From assembly GCF_023055435.1 (NCBI RefSeq), contig NW_025963890.1, positions 50,778,001 to 50,842,000 on the forward strand: a DNA stretch of 64,000 nt, in the 5' to 3' direction. A program made the translations under genes and the position numbers. Below, piece after piece: positions 4,173 through 48,195 of the stretch. The notes under the pieces were generated by a model, which was not told the DNA's origin, did not search any database, and worked only from the letters and a program-made list of their open reading frames with translations. Source of the DNA: Haliotis rufescens (taxonomy: Eukaryota). Numbering within the stretch: position 1 is the first letter of the stretch; the number at the start of each line of letters is the position of its first letter.

Positions 4173-4210
4173 CCATATGAGGGATACATTGACGACTTGG
4201 AGGTATAAAA
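4173..4210 (+). promoter_or_regulatory. Actin A core promoter: CArG-like box CCATATGAGG plus TATAAAA
   Basis: CArG-like box 4173-4182 (one mismatch to CC(A/T)6GG), TATA 4204-4210, about 80 nt upstream of the ATG; same arrangement at paralogs. Confidence 0.7.
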
Positions 4211-4285
4211 ATCCACCAGTCCTGACTGGTGCTATCAGCTTTAAAGCCCACAGAAGTGAAACACATTTTATCCATTTCTGCCAAA

Positions 4286-4411
4286 ATGTGTGACGACGAT
4301 GTTGCTGCGATGGTTATCGACAACGGCTCCGGCATGTGCAAGGCCGGGTTCGCCGGTGACGACGCCCCCAGAGCTGTCTTCCCCTCTATCGTTGGCCACC
4401 CAACACATCGG
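4286..4411 (+). CDS. act: Actin A (divergent), coding exon 1
   Basis: [42 protein letters not shown] followed by donor GTAAGT at 4412. Confidence 0.9.
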
Positions 4412-5847
4412 GTAAGTATTCTTTAAATGTGTGTGAAGGTTCTTGGACATTGCCATCACTGTTTACTAGTGAGCTATAGGTGTACAGGACCTCGTTAATA
4501 CGGACGGTGGGGTTCCAAGTGAAATCATCCCGTGTTATAGATGTCCGGATTAACGAGTCATTGTTATAAAGAGATGTTCTTTGTGTAAATGCAGACTGGT
4601 ATTGCCAAACAATCCTGAATTCAGGGTTCGGATTAATGAGATATGATTCTTTCTGGGTGTAATAACCGTCGCAGAGCAAAAGGCACCAACCAGCTCTCAC
4701 CAAGTAGTGACCGCGTCAACCTGGGGCCTGACTCTGTAGAAGTCGATGCAGACAAGTGAAGGTCGCCAGCTCGGAGCAATGTCATTATTTGTAGAAAACA
4801 TATAATGATAATTGTTTGTTAAGAAAGTTTTAACGCTCTCTCTTTGAAGGTGGCAATAATAATTATAACTTTGAAAGTTCCTGTGTTACTTATATTACTT
4901 ATAAAACTCGAAGTTCCTGTGTTACTTTTATTAAGTAATTGAGTTACAATTAACCAAAATCAGTTCTAACTGTACTTCTCAAAGAATGCATAGTAATTGA
5001 AATTGAAAAAGCAATTGTTTATATTGTGTGAAGACATGAACAAATTTCCTTTGCTATGCCCTTGGCATTCGGAAGGAAATGCCCCAGCATTAATTGAATT
5101 GTGAGATCATGTTTATTCTGTTGAATTTTATATACTGGCCTTTTCATATGAATCTAATGTTGATCTTTGATTTGTTAAAAGTCACATTCTTTCGCACATA
5201 AAAATGGACTTGAATCGAACCTGTTTTGTTTTGTAACCCACCATTTTCCCACTGAGCCATCCGGGCAGGTGATGATAGGGTGTTCAATCTTATATGTCAG
5301 AAGTTCAGTTGTGTGCATGCTGCCCGTTGTCTTTGTCTCGCACGCTTTTATCGAATTCCTATTATATCCTTTTCTATTGTTTCAATATAACATATCCTGG
5401 TTTTTTTCATTCTTTCTGGCATTTCTTTTAGACAGTTTATAAGTTGGATAAAAAGTCGCCCCAGTTTTGACTGAGAATGTAAGCTCGGGGCACTGGGATA
5501 TTAGGGCTTTCGTCCCTCCTCCACCGAGGAGGTGGTGTTAGTATTTTACTTCGAGGCCTTTCCCTGTCATCGAATTCGTTTTATACCGCTGTGACATTTC
5601 ACTGTAAGTTAACCCGATGTGTTCATATTCTTGTATTTAAACTGGTATGCATGCAGCCGATTGCTGTTTAACACACATTATGTCATTGTTGTAAGAGGTT
5701 AAATCGTCTGTTCTTACACCCAACTACAAGGTGATGTTAACAGATACATAATTACACGACAACAAAGAAGAAATGACATGAAATATTAAAAAACTGGTAT
5801 TTCTTTGTAGGCCAGCGAGTATTATTAGACAATAACCCGTGATTGTA

Positions 5848-6938
5848 TACTTAACAACAAAAGTTCCCGTGACATTGAATAAGATTTAATGCAAAGTTAT
5901 GTTTTTTACCAAATCTGAAACAATTTCGGTTTGCAACAGATTAAAGACACCTGTAAGTGTTCAAATGGTTTCATTCGCCATACTGATTTCGGAAAATGTG
6001 TGATTTCATAAAAAAAACCCATGCAAAAATGTCAATTTACAAATCAATAGCGATTTCCCTCTACCACTATCAAACGGGTCCTCTGTCTTGCTGTAATCCA
6101 ACCCCATACCATAACGCTGCCGCCCTCGAACCGATCTTCTTCTATGACACAATGATTGACGTAACGTTCACCTCGACGTCGGTACACTCGAATCCGTCCA
6201 TCGCTGTGGCTGAGGTGAAAACGAGACTCGTCAGTGAATAGAACTTGTCCCCACTGCATGGCCGTCCAGCGTAGACGCACATCTGTAGACGTGCTTGACG
6301 GTGGTTTCCTGTCAAAATGGGACGTCTGGCGGGTCTTCTGGCGACAATCCCTGCAAATCTGAGGCGACGACGTGACGATATTCGTCGGAGGCCAGGGATG
6401 CCTCTTGCAGTCACTGTTGCTGGCTGGAATCGATTTCGTAGGTGTGCTGTTCGAATCCAGTTGTCTTGTCGATTACTGGTTACGCGTGGCCTGCGTAATG
6501 GTCTCTGACTGCATTCGTCTGTTGCCAACGTTGCCATAAACGCCAAATGGTGTTTCTGTGGACGTTAAATTGTCTTGCAACATCACGTTGACTCGATCAC
6601 GCTTCAAGCAGACCAATGGCTCGCAGGGGCTTATTTCGGACAGGCGTGGCATTTCGTAATGTTGAATAATTGCGTAATTTTGCTGTTTTTCTGAGTGGTT
6701 GTTGTCAGCAAGATGCTAAACATTACATATGGAATCCCGTTAACGCACATGTTTTTATACCCATTCTTGGGTAGTGAAATGCATGGGGCTTGCATAAAAG
6801 TCAACTTTTGCATGGAATGCATGCTTTTCTGCAGCAGTTGCGTTTTTGTGACTTGATTCCATAGATGTACTACAATATTGTACTTGTTTGAAAAATACAC
6901 TAAAACATTGGTGTCACAGGAAGCTTTGTTGTTGAGTA
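5848..6938 (-). mobile_element. Tc1-family DNA transposon, internally deleted and frameshifted (intron of actin A)
   Basis: TIRs tacttaacaacaaaagttcccgtgac / gtcacaggaagctttgttgttgagta, TA flanks, FTDESRF and SVMVWG motifs; C-terminal catalytic region missing; same family as 21963-23487. Confidence 0.92.
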
Positions 6939-7099
6939 TATATTTTATTGAAAATAATTGTGAAATTCTGGTTCCAAAATGATGGTTGCGTTAATGTGAT
7001 GATGTAACTTATATTCACTTTCACACACAATTTTCTTGAAATTCTTGCAGTTACCAAGACAGAGACAATGAGTAAGTTTCACAAAAAAAAATGGAAAGG

Positions 7100-7342
7100 G
7101 GCTTTAGATCGTGGAGCTGCGTCCCTTGGGCACGCCAGAATCCTATGACCGTGAGTTTGAATTCCGGTTCGATATTTGTAGGTTTATCAGCATCATACCC
7201 TTGCTAGTGGGTTTCACCAAAGTGGTAAACGCCTGAGACTTGCATCACTTTCAGGATTTGCTCCAACATCAAACTGACACGCTGTGATATAACTTTAATA
7301 CTGTTCAAAGCGGTGTTATACCCAACTCACTCACTCACTCAC
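7100..7342 (+). mobile_element. Degenerate tRNA-derived SINE (family S2, long A-B box spacer)
   Basis: gcgtcccttgggcacgccaga core shared with 10044-10300; (ACTC)n tail. Confidence 0.65.
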
Positions 7343-7731
7343 ACGCCCCATTCTGTTCCTGAGTATATAGGCTGTATAGGTGTTGTGACGCGCCGTGGAG
7401 ATCGGACTTCTCAGCGTCAATTGAAAACGTCTGTTATTGACACTCTGATTTCATGTATAGAGTTTTAAATCTGTATATGTATCTCCCCAAACTGTGACTG
7501 GGGTTATTGAAGGGGGATTGAGTTATTTGCAGAAAAGGCTCAAGCCATTTAGTAGTTTCAGCACATTTGAATCATGTCCTGAACACACCACTTTTGCCAG
7601 CTACAATATGACATATTGGTCATTCTATTTTTTTTATTGTCAGTGGAGTACGGCTGTGATATTCACATGCAGGTTTGACAATGATAAGAAGTTATTGTAC
7701 AGAATATATATGTTGTCATCAATTTTTCCAG

Positions 7732-8730
7732 GGTGTGATGGTCGGTATGGGACGGGACAGCTACGTCGGTGACCAGGCTCAGTCAATGAGACATAATCTC
7801 ACCCTCAAGTACCCAATCAAGCATGGTATCGTCACCAACTGGGACGACATGGAGAAGATCTGGCATCACACCTACAACGAGCTCCGTGTGGCCCCAGAGG
7901 AGCACCCCGTCCTTCTGACTGAGGCTCCACTCAACCCCAAGGCCAACCGTGAAAAGATGACCAAGATCATGTTCGAGACCTTCAACTCTCCAGCTATGTA
8001 TGTGGCCATCCAGGCTGTTCTGTCTCTTCACGCATCTGGTCGTGTCACGGGTATTGTTCTTGACTCTGGTGATGGTGTCACCCACACTGTCCCCATTGAC
8101 GTGGGTTACGCCCTTCCGCACGCCATAACGAGTCTGGATCTTGCTGGTTGTGGCCTCACAGACTACCTCATTAGGATCCTGACTGAACGTGGTTACTCCT
8201 TCACCACCATTGCCGAACGAGAAATCGTCAGGGACATCAAGGAGAAGTTAGCTTACATTGCTTTAGACTTTGAACAGGAAATGCAGACTGTTGCCTCTTC
8301 CTCTTCATTGGAGAAGATCTACGAGCTTCCCGACGGTCAGGTCATCACCATTGGCAACGAGAGGTTCCGTTGTCCAGAGGCCCTCTTCCAGCCATCCTTC
8401 TTGGGTATGGAATCTGCTGGTATCCATGAAACAACATACAACTCCATCATGAAGTGTGATGTTGATATTCATAAAGACTTGTATGCCAACATTGTTCTCT
8501 CAGGAGGTACCACCATGTTCCCCGGTATCGCCGACAGAATGCAGAAGGAGATCACAGCCCTTGTTCCAGCATCAATGAAGATCAAGATCATCGCGCCTCC
8601 AGAGAGGAAATACTCCGTCTGGATCGGTGGCTCCATCCTTGCCTCTCTGTCCACCTTCCAGCAGATGTGGATCAGCAAGCAGGAGTACGATGAGTCCGGC
8701 CTATCCATTGTTCACAGGAAGTGTTATTAG
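7732..8730 (+). CDS. act: Actin A (divergent, 374 aa total), coding exon 2
   Basis: Acceptor tttttccag at 7731; open frame GVMVGMG...IVHRKCY*; two single-codon deletions (Q49/K50 region and F90), no stops. Confidence 0.88.
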
Positions 8731-9068
8731 GGTCTGAAGTTGGACACGATAGTGACATTTTAGCGAATACTTTTCATCATTGATAAGGCCACTATTAAAC
8801 ATTGTTCTTCTGATTGTTGTCCAAATCTGAAGATACGGAGTGCAACTGTTTTGTTATTGAAATAACTAAGTAAATTGCATCAGGAGCCTTTGTGTATTTA
8901 CTCACATGTTATCATTCATTTGGTATTGATGGCTTGATATGTATCGCACCTGTCATATACCAACAATACAGCTAAATATTTGTATTCATTGATACAGTAA
9001 CATATATTGGGTAACTTGTATTGGTGGAGATGGCTACACGTCAGCCCTTGTTGCTTGATAATACACAT

Positions 9069-13043: not shown

Positions 13044-13166
13044 ATGGCTGAATTATCTTCCCCTGTTGTCATGGACAACGGTTCGAGCACGAGCAGGGCG
13101 GGGTTTGCAGGAGCCTCCCAGCCGTCATGTGTCTTCCCGTCCATTGTCGGCAGGCCCAGGGGACAG
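13044..13166 (+). CDS. Actin-like gene B, coding exon 1 (highly divergent)
   Basis: [41 protein letters not shown]; acceptor tttttcag 4 nt before the ATG; GT at 13167 at the conserved 41/42 position (weak donor gtctaa). Confidence 0.8.
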
Positions 13167-14565
13167 GTCTAAAACCAACAAATATATTCTTGTATTTGTA
13201 CATTTGTACGCGCGGTAGGACAGGACACCCGGTGTCGTCATTGATTTTCAGTGATCCATTCGTGTAGTTATCACCGTTATTTTGGCAATGGAATATGTTT
13301 TTTCGGACAATCGAGACCCGTGTGTTGTTTTACGCCACAGTCGGCCATGTTCCAGCTGTATCGAGTGTGGACCAGGAAAATCTTATTTAGAATTTCCACA
13401 AGGCACCAGTAATGACAAAACTATACATGTGAACTGTTAAATAACTATAAGGGTCCTTACTTGAACAGAAGAAAAGTTTTGGTAGTGACTGGGTGAGTTT
13501 GTAACGCTGCACCATACAATGAAATATTGCGGTCCCATGTCATATTAGTCCCTTATCACATTGATCTGCAGCACGGAAACATTATCGTCAAATACAGTCA
13601 TTGTTGTAAAAAAATGATTAACGTAATCACAACGAGGACACCGCGGGTGTCATGGGTCAGGATATCCTGTACTTCCGGTAGTATTTGACACGTTGGAAGG
13701 TCAAGGTCATGTGTTTTGTCCATAGAGAATTCGAAAGTTATAATTATGGCAGTATGTTGTGGAAGTAGAGACAAAATGTTATTTATATTATTCATGTGTT
13801 TTACCCAGAAAGTTGTTTTGTTATTAGCTGAGTTTTTTTATGAATATGAAATCACTTTCTCGCTTTTGTTTACACGGCAGTAGAGTCCAGTCAAAAAAAT
13901 AAGAATCTCATTGGCAACCATGAACTTTCGGCAAGGTCACAATCTGTCAGGGAAATTTTGCTCATCCCCTCCATCAATTGGTCAAATTGTACTTACATAC
14001 AGAGTATTTGATTTTCTGCGAAAACGTAAGCTGTAACTTTGATCAAACAACAGTTCAGCACGTCTCCTATGACCCTCTTTGAACTTTTCAGTGAAAGAAC
14101 ATGCTCGATTGTACCTAAAAAGTTATGAAATGTAGACACCGAAAGTTGATTCAGCCGGAATTTTCGACAAAAAGGGAAAGTTGGATGTCATCCCTCTTGT
14201 CATACAGTCTTGTGGATATTTTTAGTTGTCTATACTCTGATACCTTTTGCATGATACAAATGAGGCAGTGTATTAGTCTGTTATATCCAGCTCAGTAGGG
14301 TAAATCAGTGGAAGGGAGTTGACATTTTGACCATTTTGAACCACAATGAATGCATGTTTTGAAGAGACGAGTAAAGATTGGACTGTGATTTCATGACAAA
14401 GCGAATGATGCTTAGACCTTGCCCTGGTGAATATGTTAAATTCTGATAAATTGTTGCTAACTGTTACATGTCGTCTCATGCCTAGGTCGTATATAACTGT
14501 ATACACATTTTAGTCGTGACATAATTATATTTACTGCCAGTATCATGATATCTTCATCATATGAA

Positions 14566-14725
14566 GACCCGTGAAGATTCCGGGGTAGAATAGGTCTTCA
14601 GCAACCCATGCTTGCCGTAAAAGGTGACTATGCTTGTCGTAAAAGGCGACTTACAGGATCGGGTGGTCAGGCTCGCTGAATATTGCTTAGTGCGGCGTTA
14701 ATCAACAAAGCAACCAACCAACCAA
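14566..14725 (+). mobile_element. S1 element, internally deleted
   Basis: gacccgtgaagattccggggtagaataggtcttcagc head joined directly to the aatattgcttagtgcggcgtt tail. Confidence 0.8.
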
Positions 14726-14759
14726 TCATCATATGAAATACAGACAATCTTCCTTCCAG

Positions 14760-15761
14760 GGCGTGATGGTCGGTATGGGACAGAAGGACAGCTACGTCGG
14801 TGACGAGGCTCAGTACAAGAAAGGTATCCTCACCCTCAAGTACCCCATCGAGCACGGTATCGTCACCAACTGGGACGACATGGAGAAGATCTGGCATCAC
14901 ACCTTCTACAACGAGCTCCGTGTTGATCCAGAGGAGCACCCCGTCCTCCTGACTGAGGCTCCCATGAACCCCAAGGCCAACCGTGAAAAGATGACCCAGA
15001 TCATGTTCGAGACCTTCAACACTCCCGCAATGTCTTTGGCCATCCAGGCTGTTCTGTCCCTGCATTCCTCTGGCCACAAGACGGGTATTGTTCTGGATTC
15101 CGGTGATGGTACAACACATGTTATTCCCATATATGAAGGATACTATTTGCCACACGCTGTTTGTAAGACGATAATATCGGGACGAGATATAACAGATCAC
15201 ATGCTTAAACTGCTCAACGACCGTGGATGCAACTTCACCACCCGTGCAGAGTATGCCATCGTCAGAGATATCAAAGAGACGCTCTGCTACGTGGCCTATG
15301 ACTACAAACACGAGCTGAATACGATGACCAAGTCTACCATAAACAAAACCTATATACAACCAGATGGGACGTTCACCACAGTTGGTGACGAACGCTTCAA
15401 GTGCCCAGAGGTGATTTTTAATCCTCTATTGATGGGCGTGGAAATGTCCGGGATACAGGATATTTTGTCAAGGTCGTTACAGATGTGTGACAGCTCTATC
15501 CATGGTCAGCTGTATGGCAACATAGCTTTGTGTGGAGGGTCGACACTTTTCCCAGGATTCTCTGACCGCCTTCGGAAAGAGATAGAAAATGTAGCACCTG
15601 CTGGAACTACCGTCAACGTGAGAGCCCCACCCCATGGACTCATGTCAGCGTGGGTGGGGGGCTCGATGAAGGCCGCCCTACCCTCCTTCATGGATGCTGT
15701 AATGACGAAGGATATGTACGATGAATCTGGACCATCTCTAGTCCATCGATGTTGTTTTTGA
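14760..15761 (+). CDS. Actin-like gene B (374 aa total), coding exon 2
   Basis: Acceptor ccttccag at 14759; uninterrupted ORF; H73, Q137, DSGDG and H161 retained; first ~90 codons conventional, remainder strongly diverged; ends HRCCF*. Confidence 0.88.
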
Positions 15762-16274
15762 TCATGTTTTGACTTTCTTTACAACTACGTAGAAAGTTGA
15801 ATTGTTTTGTTATTTCATACATATATTGTATACCTAATATGTAAAATATGTGTATATAGTGAGATATCATCATTGTTTTCGGTGGGGCACTGGTGTCCGT
15901 AATACATCCCTCAGACGTGTCAGTACTTTGATTGTGGGTTCAAAGGGAGGAGTGTTTGATCACACACCGGTCCCTTGATGCCCGTTGACTGACTTGATGA
16001 CTTTCCTCGTTGCTTAGATTATTTTTTTGAAATTTCGATCTCTTGAGAAACTTGAGAAAATGATTGGAAGTAACGATAAATTCGAGAAAATAATCGAAAT
16101 TACGAGAACATAATCGAAATAATGAGAGAAAATTCAATTACAAAATTGATATAACGAGGAAGTGACACCATTAGGTTTTCGTACAAAACGTCAAAGCCAG
16201 AGAATAATTGGTCCTGACTACTAGTATTAATGACAAGGCTCAGGCCATTTGACAGTTATAGCAAATTTGAATGC

Positions 16275-17036
16275 CAGATTATGTTCGAGACCTTCAACTC
16301 TCCACCTTTGTATGTGGCCATCCAGGCTAGTCTGTCTCTGTACGCTTCTGGTCCTACGACGGGCATTGCTTTTGATTTTGGTGATGGTTTCACCCGCACT
16401 ATGTCCATCTACGGTTTACACCCTTCCCACGCCATAGCGACACTGGATCTCGCTGGGCATCAACTGACAGAATACTTCATGAAGATCCTCACCCAGCGTG
16501 GTTCATCCTTCACCACCACTGCCAAGAGAGAAATTGCCAGGGACATCAAGGAAACACTTGCCCATGTGGCACTTGACATCGAACGGGGGATGGCTACTGT
16601 TGCGACTTCTTCCTCCGTGGAAAAGAGCTACGAGCTTCTCGACGATCATACCAGCACAATTGGTAACGAGAGGTTCCGTTGTCCAGAGGCTCTCTGCCAG
16701 CCATCCATTTTGGGCATGGAATCTGCTGGTGTCCACGAAACATCATATGGTTCCATCATGAAGTGTTATGTTGATATTCGTAAAGACCTGTACGCCAACA
16801 CTGTTCTCTCAGGAGGTACCACCATGTTCCCCCGTATCGCCGACAGAATGCAGAAGGAGATCACAGCCCTTGCTCGAGCAACAATGAAGATCGAGGTCAT
16901 TGCTCCTCCAGAGAGAAAATACTCCGTCTGGATCGGTGGCTCCAACCTTGCCTTGATGTCCACCTTCCAGCAGATGTGGATCAGCAAGCAGGAGTATGAT
17001 TCCGGCCGGTTCATTGCTCACAGAAAGTGTTTTTAG
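16275..17036 (+). pseudogene. act: Actin C, 5'-truncated (starts at Q121)
   Basis: Intron-like sequence (compare 7537-7575) fused directly to cagattatgttcgagacc; exon 1 and ~80 codons of exon 2 missing; many substitutions, frame still open. Confidence 0.85.
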
Positions 17037-20714: not shown

Positions 20715-20840
20715 ATGTGCGACGACGATGTTGCTGCGTTGGTTATCGACAACGGCTCCGGCATGTGCAAGGCCGGGTTCGCCGGTGACGACGCTCCCAG
20801 AACTGTCTTCCCCTCCATCGTCGGCCGCCCAAGACATCAG
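20715..20840 (+). CDS. act: Actin E, coding exon 1
   Basis: [42 protein letters not shown], donor GTAATT at 20841. Confidence 0.93.
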
Positions 20841-21756
20841 GTAATTATACTTGATCTTTGTGAAGGTTCACGGACCCGTTGGCGCTCCAAGTAAGAAATC
20901 CTCCAGCTTTTTAGATATCCGGTTTACGAGTCATTTTTATAATGAAATGTCCTTTGTGTAAATGTAGACAGATACTGTCAGAAATTGTCTTTCAGATTAA
21001 CGAGGGTTCACTGTATAAGATTGTTTCTTGGTATAATAAGTTTCACAGAGCAAGCGCCTCCAACTAGCTCTCACCAAGCAGTTTCCGCATCACTCCGGTG
21101 CCTCAGTATGTATCAGGTAATGAAGGTCGCTCTTTCCAGTGGCAGTATTGAAAATAACTCTAAGCTCTTCAGTTACCTATTCAAGTTGCGATTATCCGGC
21201 GATTATCGAACCATTTAGAATTCTACTATCCTTATGTATGTAAGTTCCGTGACTTTATATGAATGCCACTTCTTCAATAGAAGCGGTTTTACTTACTGGA
21301 GGTTACTGATGATGTTATGTGGGAGGAAAAAACCAGGTCGCCATAATGGGCCATGGTGGCTTCTGATTACAGAACCATCGTAAGCATTGACAAACAATGT
21401 TATAGAAAGACAAGTAACGACAAAACACTCAATATATCTCCAACGCATCGGCTCATGTTGTGTGAATATGATGCATCTGGTACAGATACTACGTTTAGTC
21501 ATCTCTGTTAAAGCAAAACAACGGTCGGTTTGGCAGTTCTAGCAAATTTCAGTGAAGTGGTGAAACGTCACTTTTGCATGCCAGCTCAAATATAATATAT
21601 GTACATCAAAACGTCAACACCAGACAATAACCAGTCTCGATTATCTGCTGAAACAGGTTTCCTTCATTTCAAATGAATGGATCACTGCAAAACAGTTATG
21701 ACGCCAGGTGTTCGCGAAAAGGGCAAACACGTTCTGCTGTGACTCACAGTTACCTG

Positions 21757-21962
21757 TACCTATCTATATCAATATCTATCTATATCTGTCTGTCTGTCTG
21801 TCTGTCTACCTATTTCTATTTCTCTATCTGTCTGTCTGTGTGTCTGTCTGTCAATATCTATCTATCTACTTCTATATCTATATCTGTCTGTCTGTCTGTA
21901 TCTATTTGTATATCTGTCTGTCTGTCTGTCTATCTATCTATATATCACTCTCTCTGTATATA
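21757..21962. repeat. Compound (TCTA)/(TCTG) microsatellite
   Basis: Visible tetranucleotide runs; paralogous to 56241-56568. Confidence 0.9.
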
Positions 21963-23487
21963 TAAACTCAACAACAAAAGTTCCCGTGACACCAATATTT
22001 TAGTTTATATTTCAAACAAGTAAAGTTTGTTTTTCAATTTTGTAGTACATGTATTGAATCAAGTCACAAAACGCACCTGCTACAGAAAATCATGCATACC
22101 ATGCAAAAGTTGACTTTTATGCAAGCCCCATGCATTTCACTACCCAAGAATGGGTATAAAAACATGTGCGTTAACGGGATTCCATATGCATTGTTTAGCA
22201 TCGTGCTGACAACCACTCAGAAAAACAACAAAATTACGCAATTATTCAACATTACGAAATGCCACGCCTGTCCGAAAATGAGCGTCTGTCAGCCATTGGT
22301 ATGCTTGAAGCAGGATCGAGTCAACGTGATGTTGCAAGACAATTAAACGTCCACAGAAAAACAATTTGGTGTCCACAGAAACACCATTTGGTGTTTATGG
22401 CAACGTTGGCAACAGGCGAATGCAGTCAGAGACCATCCTCAGAGTGGCAATAACCAATAATCGACAAGACAACTGGATTCAAACAACACACCTACGAAAT
22501 CGATTCCAGCCAGTAACAGTGACTGCGAGAAGCATCCCTGGCCTTCGAAGAATATCTTCACAAACCGTACGTCGCCGCCTCAGATGTGCAGGGACTGTCG
22601 CCAGAAGACCCACCAGACGTCCCATTTTGACAGGCAACCACCGTCAAGCACGTCTACAGTGGTGCAGACAGCTTCTACGCTGGACGGCCATGCAGTGGGG
22701 ACAAGTTCTATTCACTGACGAGTCTCGTTTTCACCTCAGCCACAGCGATGGACGGATTCGAGTGTACCGACGTCGAGGTGAACATTACGTCAATAATTGT
22801 GTCATGGAAGAAGATCGGTTCGGGGGCTCCCTCGTTATGGTATGGGGTGGGATTACAGCAAGACAGAGGACCCGTTTGCTAGTGGTAGAGGGAAATCTCA
22901 ATGGACAGCGCTACTGCGACGAGATCATCAGCCCTGTTGTTCTACCGTTTTTGCGTCGTCGTGGCCCAGGCATTACCTTTCAACATGACAACACCCGGCC
23001 TGATATTGCTCGACTTGTTCAGGATTCTCTTCAACAAAACAACGTGAATGTCATCCCCTGGCCGACTCGCGCCCCTGATCTCTCACCAATCGAGCACACA
23101 TGGGATGAGATGGATCGGCGCCTTCGACGTCAACCACGTGTTCCACAGACACTCCAGGAACTTCGAAACATGCTCCAGCAGATATGGACAGATGTCTCAC
23201 AGGACCTTGTGCGACGCCTGGTCCATTCCATGAGACGAAGATATGTTGCTTGCATCGCAACCAGAGGTGGACACACACGCTATTGTTTTGTAATTTGACA
23301 TTTTGGCATGTTCATGTTTTTTTTATATGAAATCATGCATTTTCTGAAGTCAGTATGGCAAATTAAACCATTTGAACACTTACAGGAGTCTTTTATCTGT
23401 TGCAAACCGACATTGTTTCAGATTGATAAAAAACATAACTTTGCATTAAATCTTATTCAATATCACAGGGACTTTTGTTGTTCAGCA
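21963..23487 (+). mobile_element. Tc1-family transposon, near full length, frameshifted DD34E transposase (22259-23298)
   Basis: TIRs at both ends; MPRLSENERLSAIGMLEAG start, FTDESRF, QHDN-34aa-E(PIEHTW); short tandem duplication near 22350-22392 breaks the frame; empty site in the actin H intron near 56560. Confidence 0.95.
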
Positions 23488-23637
23488 TATATATCTACTC
23501 TTCCTGTTTGATCGTGCACCAATCCCTGCACAACTGGTGTACTCCAACAGCTCACGTGACGAGCATGGATGATCGGGTTTCTCAACGTCAATTGAAAACT
23601 AACTTCTGTTATCCAGGCCATGACGCTCTGATTTCAT

Positions 23638-23813
23638 GGGGGCGGTCGGGTAGCCTAGTGGTTAAAGCGTTCGCTCGTCACGCCGAAGACCCGGGTTCGA
23701 TTCCCGACATGGGTACAATGTGTGAAGCCCATTTCTGGTGTCCCCTGCCGTGATATTGCTGGAATATTGCTAAAAGCGGCGTAAAACCATACTCACTCAC
23801 TCACTCACTCACT
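23638..23813 (+). mobile_element. tRNA-derived SINE (family S3, GTC-anticodon-like head)
   Basis: A box tagcctagtgg, B box ggttcgattcc, no acceptor-stem pairing, (ACTC)n tail; near-identical copies at 51960 and 61757. Confidence 0.9.
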
Positions 23814-24337
23814 AACAATCCCGGTGTTGTTGAGTTCGATGCGTATGTTATGCCCGGCATGAATTACTTGCAATGACTTTTGTGTTCGTATTTAGAGCAT
23901 GACGGCTACAAATACCTTACCCCGGTTTATGTGTTTACCATATTGTGCCCAAATATGGAAATGAAAAGATCTACTCTATTGTATACATGTAGAACACAGT
24001 TGTCACAGGGTTGTGTTTAAAAGGGTTTGACCAACGAACTAAATACAATCTGTGAAATGTTCTGAAAGGCAGTTTGTTCGTGCATTTTCGTGCATGAAAA
24101 CCGGTTTTCTTGTATATTAACCTGAATGAAGGTTGGGTAGGCGCGAGATAGCACTCCCGCTATAATAGGAGATCGCAATGTACAAAATATGTACTCCTAA
24201 TGGTTCAAGCGGTGGCTTGTCAAACGGAGAAACCCGGATCCCAACTGCTTGTTGTTTCTGTCCGCCGCCGTTTGAACACTGCTGAAACCGTCGGACAACC
24301 TTACTAACGCAATATTGTATGCTTTGTATGCCTGTGA

Positions 24338-25414
<1,077 letters not shown>

Positions 25415-45670: not shown

Positions 45671-45796
45671 CAGTTGGACCGCAACGTTTCTGCGCTGGTT
45701 ATCGACAACGGCTCTGGCATGTGTAAGGCTGGGTTCGCCGGTGACGACGCCCCCAGAGCTGTCTTCCCCTCTATCGTCGGACGCCCCAAACATGAT
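45671..45796 (+). pseudogene. act: Actin G exon 1, start codon lost
   Basis: [42 protein letters not shown]|GTAATT; no ATG at the homologous position; first in-frame Met is M16 at 45719. Confidence 0.8.
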
Positions 45797-46996
45797 GTAA
45801 TTATACTATGATCTGTGAGAAGGTTCGTGGACATTGCCACCACTGTCAAGTGGTGTGGATGTACAGGAAACCACCTTCAATACGGACGGTGGGGTTCGAA
45901 GTGAAATCCGCCGTTGTTATAGATATTCGTATAAACGAAACATTGTTATAGAGATCTATCTTTTCTGTAAATGATATTGTCAAGATTCCTGGACTAAGGG
46001 GATCGGATTAACAAAGGTTCACTTAATAAGATTGTTTCTAGGTATCATAAGCTTCACAGTGCAAATGACACCATCTAAATCTCACCCAGCAGTGTCCGCG
46101 TCAACCTGGGGCCTGAATCAGTCGATGCAGACGAGCACTCACTTGCTAACTTGGAGCAAGGTCAATGAGTGAGTGAGTGGGTTTACTGACCATGTGTTTA
46201 AGGAAATATTGTTAATAATAAAGGCGATAACTACATGTGATACCAAACGAAAAGTAAGCGTGTCCTGCTCTACTGGTTGCACCCGCCACTCACAAAAGTT
46301 TCATTAAAGTCTTGCTGTGTCATGTACAGAGAGTACCAAGTTAAACACAAATGACAACGTAAAGACCTCAAATGGAAAAGGGCTATAGATCTTGGAGTCA
46401 CATTTAAAGAAACCCATGAACCATGGATATATGTGCTGTAGAGATCTATACTTCGCGTTTGATCGTGCGCCAACCCCTTTACAACGAGTGTACTCCAACA
46501 GCAGTATGACAACCGGGGAGGTTGGGCTTCTCAGCGTAATTGTAAACTGATGCTATTCAGGTCATGACGCTCTGATTTCATGAATAGTTTTTTTTAATCC
46601 ATACAAATTAACCTGCACAGCATACAAATGTTTTCTACTAACAATTCCCCTGGTGAAGAGTGGCATATTTGCAGTGACTTTTGTCTTTGTATTGTGAACA
46701 TCACGCCTACAAAAGGCCTTATCACGTCCAAATATGGATATGAAAAGTTCCCCCTATTTTGTGAAAATATTAAAAATTATAGATTCACCCTTGTCATAGG
46801 GCTGTGTTTAAACGAGTTTTCCCAAGGAACTAAAGACGATCTTTATACAGGCTGGGTGGCACTCCCACTATCATCGGGGATCACTATAACCAAAATATGA
46901 ATCCAACTTTTTACGGCGTTGGCGTTGGCGTGTTGTTGTTGTTTTGAACGCAATCACGCAATAGTACAGATATCACGCAATAGTACAGAGTATTAA

Positions 46997-48016
<1,020 letters not shown>

Positions 48017-48195
48017 ATTTAGGGGCTGACATTCCATACGATAGTAACATGTACCAAACACTTTTCATCACTGATAACGCCACTATTAATTATTGTCCTT
48101 ATCCAAAATTAAAGCTACGGAGGACAAACTGTTTTGTTATTGTAATGACAAAGTAAATTGCATCAGGACTCCAGGTAATGTTTTGAGACTTTGAG

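Follow-up and report, generated by a model that had tools for sequence, protein, structure and literature searches.

Here we describe actin A, a two-exon actin gene in a 64,000-nt window of the red abalone (Haliotis rufescens) genome (G000:C112:50778001-50842000, where G000 is the genome searched). We found that actin A keeps an open reading frame and that the replacements private to it cluster on residues that hold actin filaments together, including both partners of the K61-E167 salt bridge. Few proteins known are as constrained as actin, and natural variants that alter both sides of one subunit contact are therefore rare. The explanation that we favour, with middling confidence, is that actin A is a copy in a birth-and-death array in which the normal longitudinal contacts went first and which, although its frame remains open, is now drifting.

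Replacements at the filament contacts of actin A

Residue numbers were fixed by alignment to a solved beta-actin chain, which exon 2 of actin A matches end to end over residues 42-375 (E=1.5e-198). When the alignment was checked on this numbering, every substitution listed in the initial annotation of the window was present (coordinates in Table 1). Altogether 28 positions of exon 2 and 4 of exon 1 are non-conventional in actin A, which also has two codon deletions. In the part of exon 1 that was compared, four replacements and one synonymous change are private to actin A. The pointed-face changes of subdomain 2 between 7753 and 7821, which also include E57Q and G63H, are all private to actin A among 24 conventional-type copies. 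The codon lost at 49/50 is read most simply as Q49R plus loss of K50. The replacements E72K, R177S, R183C, D184G, T203I, A230V, S239I, R290H, A321V and P367L had not been listed before. Residue 203 is N in the black-abalone counterpart of actin A and in L029, a frameshifted copy upstream of the window. The changes Y143H and T148V, which had been described as part of the opposing barbed-end cleft, are present as claimed but are not private, being common to copy D (L020) of the same array and to the black-abalone protein model P0003.

To define filament contacts we used the 40 residues named by Chou & Pollard (10.1101/309534), of which 36 lie in exon 2. The contacts were drawn from the paper's text, not from an interface measured on coordinates, and statements resting on this and the other cited papers refer to excerpts of them. 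The longitudinal pairs given there are R39-D286, K61-E167, R62-D288 and D244-R290, with a cation site at T202, E205 and D286 and a D-loop (40-50) that wraps the W-loop (165-172). Y169 packs against P38 and I64, F375 pairs with V43, and M44 enters a pocket formed by L142, Y143, T148 and I165. R39, R290, Y143, T148 and F375 participate in one interface. The lateral contacts are K113-E195, E270-R39, E270-T203 and G268-H173.

We found that 9 of the 20 exon 2 columns private to actin A among the 24 conventional-type copies fall on these contacts (hypergeometric P=5.2e-5), an enrichment of about four-fold. Further contact positions are changed beyond these nine: Y143H and T148V, which are shared, and R39T and Q41R in exon 1, where L8M and R37H lie outside the set. 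Actin A does not keep the conserved subunit-contact residues of conventional filament-forming actin. Clustering of the substitutions on the interface had been set beforehand as a check on the initial annotation, and it was found. Actin A was itself flagged for its contact pattern beforehand, and the enrichment stays significant after correction for about 30 actin copies. When the whole H-plug (262-274) was added post hoc, the result for actin A was P=0.0005, while the neighbouring copy L024 had 4 of 20 on contacts (P=0.31).

Copies with relaxed constraint in the neighbourhood show no such enrichment. On the original set the counts are 1/20 for L024, 0/11 for L020, 2/11 for L023 and 0/7 for L022; pooled, 3 of 49 private columns fall on contacts (Fisher test against actin A, P=0.0004). 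In addition, the actin A positions were shifted circularly along the sequence, which keeps their bunching. None of 333 shifts reached nine contacts, the maximum being 6 and the mean 2.1. Judged from these alignments, random decay would not produce this pattern of contact replacement.

Plain random decay from the start, in which the clustering on the interface would come from chance or from mutational clustering along the sequence, is an improbable account of actin A. It agrees with the rate ratio of the A branch, which equals that of its neighbours, with the bunching of changes in residues 37-72 and 166-184, and with the two private synonymous changes that also lie in the W-loop. However, it is disfavoured by the hypergeometric test, the circular shifts and the control copies, as well as by the age of the changes, since the old shared ones are enriched on contacts and the later ones are not (see below). 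Nor was a donor with these residues found among the copies examined. Gene conversion from a divergent donor was considered and rejected: no other copy in the genome is more than 92% identical to actin A exon 2, and none of the divergent copies L025-L028 and L031-L036 has M61, H63, N64, K72, D166 or V167, although L034 has Q57.

Selection by bacterial actin-modifying toxins against K50, T148 and R177, resulting in toxin-insensitive or decoy actins, would be a very improbable source of the pattern. Actin A lacks three of the six direct target residues named in the introduction of PMC7828245 (P=0.009), and the idea extends to neighbours that have lost E270 and T351 (E270K and T351D in L024, E270K in L023). 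However, it explains only 3 of the 28 non-conventional exon 2 positions. K50 and T148 also belong to the contact set, which confounds it with the filament reading, and an actin that does not polymerise gives no resistance.

We find it extremely improbable that the codon deletions or some of the substitutions are assembly errors. Sequencing runs were searched with exon 2 and its flanks (7600-9000), and ten DNA runs of red abalone from four studies match the stretch, with shares of 0.43-0.64 of the sampled words. Runs of two further organisms also match, with shares of 0.37-0.38. An independent black-abalone genome has the same barbed-face changes, and each deletion cleanly removes one codon from non-repetitive sequence. 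Among the runs that this search covered, no RNA run of red abalone was matched; six RNA matches, with shares of 0.09-0.13, carry other organism labels.

Age of the changes and selection on actin A

The black-abalone model P0003 (actin, cytoplasmic-like, Haliotis cracherodii, 543 aa) combines two actin genes in a chimera. Its first part, up to about residue 297, is orthologous to L024 and has K118R, A181G, P264L, loss of M269, E270K and A272S in common with it. Its second part, residues 299-543, is orthologous to actin A from residue 131 onwards; the pointed-face residues 37-72 lie outside this coverage. Over residues 132-375 the two orthologues of actin A share 11 derived states, H143, V148, D166, V167, T176, S177, C183, R191, H290, L367 and Y375, of which six are on contacts. 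Of the 19 later changes, five are found only in red abalone, 11 only in black abalone, and three positions (184, 203, 323) are derived in both but differently. Only one of these 19 is on a contact (Fisher P=0.004). Since the derived states are common to red and black abalone, this comparison shows the remodelling of the barbed face and gate to be older than the split of the two species. The positions of the changes since the split are random, whereas those of the whole branch are not.

RefSeq models of 534-543 aa such as P0003 and P0022 run out of one actin gene around residues 290-297 and resume at residue 131 of the gene that follows in the array. Such joins link L029 to L024 in red abalone (G000:C112:50751255-50779246) and L024 to actin A in black abalone, and models in this size range are also listed among the conventional actins of Haliotis, Mya, Mytilus, Crassostrea and Dreissena. 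These models could reflect real intergenic splicing or a systematic annotation artefact. We considered the chimera as proof that the actin A orthologue of black abalone is broken and rejected it, because the same architecture is annotated for conventional copies and for L029 with L024 in red abalone.

An abalone mutation-rate preprint gives a rate of 8.6e-9 per generation, a generation time of 6 years and an age of 4.3 million years for the common ancestor. The implied neutral divergence is about 0.012 per site, perhaps 0.02 with ancestral polymorphism, or 6.8-11.1 replacements in 244 codons. We counted 20 replacements in 244 codons between the actin A orthologues and 19 in 247 for the L024 pair, at or above this expectation. 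The recent evolution of actin A is without sign of purifying selection in these sequences; it looks neutral or faster, and alike in the neighbours A and L024. We read this as drift because equal positive selection on two neighbours would be a coincidence.

Selection on individual branches was estimated with our own codon likelihood on 10 copies, summing over ancestors. Ancestral sequences were not reconstructed, and substitution counts were made against living copies. The pairwise synonymous divergence (dS) of actin A is smallest against L004 (0.16), L024 (0.17) and L020 (0.17). The ratio of nonsynonymous to synonymous rates (omega) is 0.030 in the background and 0.48, 0.51, 0.46 and 0.19 on the terminal branches of A, L024, L020 and L023; for the conventional copies L002, L004 and L009 it is 0.009, 0.02 and 0.11. 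Twice the log-likelihood difference (2dlnL) between a separate ratio for the A branch and a one-ratio model is 22.9, and the strong purifying selection of conventional actin, with an omega of a few percent, is not seen on the A branch. Tests against an omega of 1 used re-optimised values, as fixed branch lengths overstate significance. They are marginal, with P=0.042 over all columns and P=0.077 over non-interface columns.

Along the A branch omega is 2.0-2.8 at contact columns and 0.32-0.44 elsewhere. This partition is supported on the A branch (2dlnL 17.8, P=2.5e-5) and is not significant on three control branches.

In the course of events that we favour, residues of the longitudinal contact between subdomain 2 and subdomain 3 were replaced on both sides in the A lineage, with K61M facing E167V. 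I64N, G63H, R39T, a D-loop one residue shorter, Y143H, T148V, Y166D, R290H and F375Y belong to the same set of changes, as do the gate and cleft changes R177S, R183C, D184G and E72K. A protein made from such a gene would be expected to stay largely out of conventional filaments. A redundant, defective copy that still co-polymerises would act as a dominant poison, as human I64N and R183C do, and changes that remove the copy from filaments would therefore be tolerated or favoured. At present actin A would be an unconstrained, crippled copy on its way out that has yet to take a disabling hit, because the replacements since the species split show no link to the interface and have accumulated at a rate close to or exceeding the neutral one, with L024 behaving alike.

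The initial annotation had proposed an actin that is monomeric or polymerises only with itself, rather than random decay. The non-random loss of contacts upholds one half of this proposal. The other half, that actin A works in this way today, is not supported by the later changes, of which 1 in 19 is on the interface and whose rate is at or above neutral.

Several observations weigh against drift as the present state of actin A. An open frame of 374 codons with in-frame indels is unexpected after long neutral drift, and the TATA box, splice sites and start codon are intact in a gene for which RefSeq has a coding model. Omega over the whole branch is under 1 at the marginal level given above. 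The contact-column omega of 2.8 exceeds 1 with a 2dlnL of 8.2 (branch lengths fixed from the other columns), which points to positive selection over mere relaxation; this signal is only suggestive, because the gene was chosen for these changes and gene conversion blurs the tree. Both gene pairs diverge beyond the neutral expectation, which could be a sign of adaptive evolution, and that expectation rests on one preprint's rate and date and on the second half of P0003 being a true orthologue. If neutral divergence were high enough to yield the observed replacements, three open frames and three in-frame indels would be surprising. Finally, the absence of red-abalone RNA runs is weak evidence, as many runs lie outside the search.

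It is possible, though we consider it unlikely, that actin A is a living, fast-evolving specialised actin that is monomer-only or mainly self-polymerising through a rebuilt contact. A Met-Val pair would then replace the K61-E167 bridge and D166 would rebuild the stiffness-cation site, and the protein might be limited to a single tissue such as gonad or sperm. The open frame with its two in-frame deletions and the intact TATA box, splice sites and start codon are consistent with such an actin, as is the change of both partners of one salt bridge. The derived barbed-face states have been retained in two species, positions 184, 203 and 323 have changed in both lineages, omega is 2.8 at contact columns and 0.44 elsewhere, and divergence between the species is above the neutral expectation. 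However, the run search matched no red-abalone RNA run, and the non-interface omega is not significantly under 1. L024 and L020 have the same omega without the interface pattern, and L024 has the same between-species divergence as well. The protein collection holds no stand-alone orthologue at 90% identity or more, the cluster of actin A having one member. Actin A also carries the exact dominant disease alleles of human actin and has lost R177, and its A-type relative L029 is already frameshifted.

A related possibility, which we consider distinctly doubtful, is that actin A, perhaps together with L024 and L020, belongs to a set of living, fast-evolving actins whose filament contacts are being rebuilt at different places, making them orthogonal to the housekeeping filaments. 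The rebuilt contact would be the longitudinal D-loop/W-loop contact in actin A and the inter-strand plug in L024. Such actins might polymerise only with themselves, be obligate monomers or be insensitive to toxins. Selection would have preserved their open frames over 4 million years or more, while they diverged faster than neutral between sister abalone species.

Gene model and the surrounding array

The intact 374-codon frame, canonical splice sites and exclusively in-frame deletions that had been ascribed to actin A are borne out by the gene model. The two exons are joined by a GT-AG intron whose acceptor reads TTTTTCCAG, the last base being 7731, at a site between residues 41 and 42 that is common to all array copies. 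We found no stop, frameshift, lost start or lost splice site across both exons. The disabling lesion expected of an unprocessed pseudogene is thus missing, both indels being in-frame. A search of a protein collection with exon 2 returned a 374-aa RefSeq model, actin-2-like (Haliotis rufescens), at 100% identity over the query. This protein is the sole member of its own 90% cluster, and conventional actins follow it at about 89-90%. The match of exon 2 to the Pfam Actin family (PF00022) reaches 408.9 bits (cut-off 27), which places actin A in the actin family. It is not an actin-related protein (Arp), being 89-92% identical to conventional actins and without insertions.

Table 1. Coordinates of actin A, its altered residues and neighbouring copies. 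Positions are those of the window unless a genome coordinate is given.
Feature	Position	Strand	Remarks
CArG-like box	4173-4182	+	CCATATGAGG; one mismatch to CC(A/T)6GG
TATA box	4204-4211	+	about 75 nt upstream of the ATG; conserved in copies A, D and G
Actin A exon 1, coding part	4286-4411	+	42 codons, ATG at 4286
R37H, R39T, Q41R	4397-4399, 4403-4405, 4409-4411	+	last codons of exon 1; L8M near the start
Actin A intron	4412-7731	+	3,320 bases; donor GTAAGT at 4412, ends in CAG
Tc1/mariner-type transposase remnant in the intron	6044-6546	-	overlapping broken frames
Actin A exon 2	7732-8730	+	332 codons and TAG, residues 42-375
Subdomain-2 (pointed) face changes	7753-7821	+	R at 7753-7755, K61M 7786-7788, I64N 7795-7797, E72K 7819-7821
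Second codon deletion	7870-7875	+	F90 missing between T89 and Y91
Y143H, T148V	8029-8031, 8044-8046	+	line the pocket entered by M44 of the neighbouring subunit
W-loop and gate changes	8098-8154	+	Y166D and E167V 8098-8103; M176T; R177S 8131-8133; R183C and D184G 8149-8154
T203I	8209-8211	+	beside polymerisation-cation residue T202; T203 backbone contacts E270 of the other strand
R290H	8470-8472	+	R290 partners D244 of the next subunit
P367L, F375Y	8701-8703, 8725-8727	+	F375Y is C-terminal
L029	G000:C112:50751255-50754986		about 25 kb upstream of the window; frameshifted actin copy
L024	G000:C112:50775248-50779246		just upstream of the window; open exon 2; omega 0.51
Copy B (L028)	13065-15758		open exon 2, 59% identical to A
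Copy C	16224-17033		fragment with many replacements
Copy D (L020)	20715-25414		open; omega 0.46
Copy F (L023)	45671-48019		no ATG at the aligned start (CAG TTG...); stop two codons early; E270K

Of the CArG/TATA promoter proposed in the initial annotation, the TATA box is kept and the CArG box is an approximate match. In the conventional copy G the aligned box is a perfect CCATATAAGG, and in copy D it is CCATGTAAGG, likewise mismatched. The transposase remnant in the intron is a weak assignment, its DDE_3 (18.6 bits) and HTH_Tnp_Tc3_2 (25 bits) matches both being under the Pfam cut-offs. At the aligned 3' site a canonical AATAAA occurs only in L002 and L004 and is degenerate in A, L024, D and the conventional G; among the 3' flanks compared (window 8731-9030), an ATTAAA about 65 nt past the stop is found in actin A alone. 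The poly(A) signal was set aside as evidence on the state of actin A, since the conventional G is degenerate too. Codon usage, GC content at third positions (GC3) and CpG were likewise uninformative, the frequency of optimal codons (Fop) of actin A being 0.586, within the conventional-copy range of 0.58-0.68.

The genome has 24 uninterrupted matches of exon 2 length at 87-100% identity, actin A included, and four more divergent ones. Actin exon 2 copies lie mainly in two arrays on the contig of the window (C112). In the tree the local copies group in a single clade (100% support), whose internal order is poorly resolved. In and next to the window the copies are L029, L024, A, B, C, D, an exon-1-like scrap, F and G, with L002 and L004 downstream; copy D was called E in the initial annotation, and copy G (L009) was called H. 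With its linked intact, divergent and dead paralogues, this is a tandem birth-and-death array. Copy G, L002 and L004 are conventional actins.

Among the divergent neighbours, L029 and the A type share T176, S177, N203, the pair at 323/324 and Y375, and L029 has W-loop changes of its own (G168D, Y169N). L029 reads as a dead relative of actin A. The inter-strand plug of L024 carries P264L, loss of M269, E270K and A272S, all common to the black-abalone orthologue, and its cleft carries L349M, T351D and M355S. Its single indel is also in-frame, and its 3' flank is identical to that of actin A at 274 of 297 positions. The first 100 residues of copy B are conventional and the remainder is very divergent. 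Copy D has a conventional D-loop and W-loop, and shares with actin A a tract with Q121K, Y143H, T148V and M176T, in which the two differ twice over nt 271-360 of the exon 2 alignment. Copy F is probably dead, judging by its start and stop, yet its omega is only 0.19.

Expected properties of the protein and known actin variants

The initial annotation regarded the nucleotide-binding site of actin A as intact. This holds for the motifs, with DSGDG, Q137 and H161 kept in exon 2 and the phosphate-loop motif present in exon 1. It does not extend to R177S, R183C, D184G and E72K, which touch the phosphate back door and cleft closure. R177 closes the back door together with N111, H73 and G74, and R183 binds D157 and the carbonyls of S14 and I71 (PMC10643162). 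The K61-E167 salt bridge is tied to a stiffness cation held by Y166 and S60 (PMC11786770), and in this region actin A has M61, D166 and V167. The protein is predicted to fold and to bind nucleotide, to bond poorly end to end and to handle phosphate abnormally. Folding by itself would say little, since a piece 89% identical to actin is expected to take the actin fold in any functional state.

Two of the substitutions are identical to human ACTA1 disease alleles at the same residues. I64N is a nemaline-myopathy allele that impairs co-polymerisation (PMC1779783), and R183C is a severe myopathy allele that affects the hydrogen bonds closing the cleft (PMC2657152). The ACTA1 alleles are single dominant changes in an essential gene, whereas actin A adds more than 25 others in a redundant copy.

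Yeast actin has A167 and no E167-K61 bridge (PMC11289367), and since yeast is viable, loss of E167 alone is not fatal. In this, actin A resembles yeast actin as well as the apicomplexan actins with compromised D-loop contacts (PMC11786770). However, these are main, conserved, filament-forming actins that keep Y166, K61 (in Toxoplasma), R177 and R183, all of which are changed in actin A.

The closest comparison is with the conventional two-exon actins of Haliotis (L002, L004 and L009), which have the same gene structure with the intron at 41/42, a TATA and CArG-type promoter, the Pfam Actin domain and intact nucleotide motifs, and are 89-92% identical to actin A in protein over exon 2. Actin A differs from them in its nine changed named contacts and in its omega of 0.48 as against 0.009-0.11. 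Unprocessed pseudogenes of tandem families are like actin A in raised omega, dead neighbours (C, F and L029) and drift since the split, but actin A is without a disabling lesion and its early changes focus on one functional surface.

Animal testis expresses lineage-specific, divergent actin-like proteins, which are young and fast-evolving offshoots of actin; these are far more diverged than actin A. Older papers on Haliotis actin genes exist, and a literature search for abalone actin arrays returned no paper on that subject among the matches listed.

If actin A is expressed, it would be a natural experiment in separating an actin from the main filament system, and could serve directly as a reagent in work on which contacts an actin needs. 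If instead the gene is dying, the array would show the order of decay, with contacts lost first and the rest later, which fits half-working actins being poisons. Molluscs have many tandem actin arrays in which the poison idea could be examined. In both cases the gene is a warning that neither an open frame nor a protein name in RefSeq guarantees a working actin.

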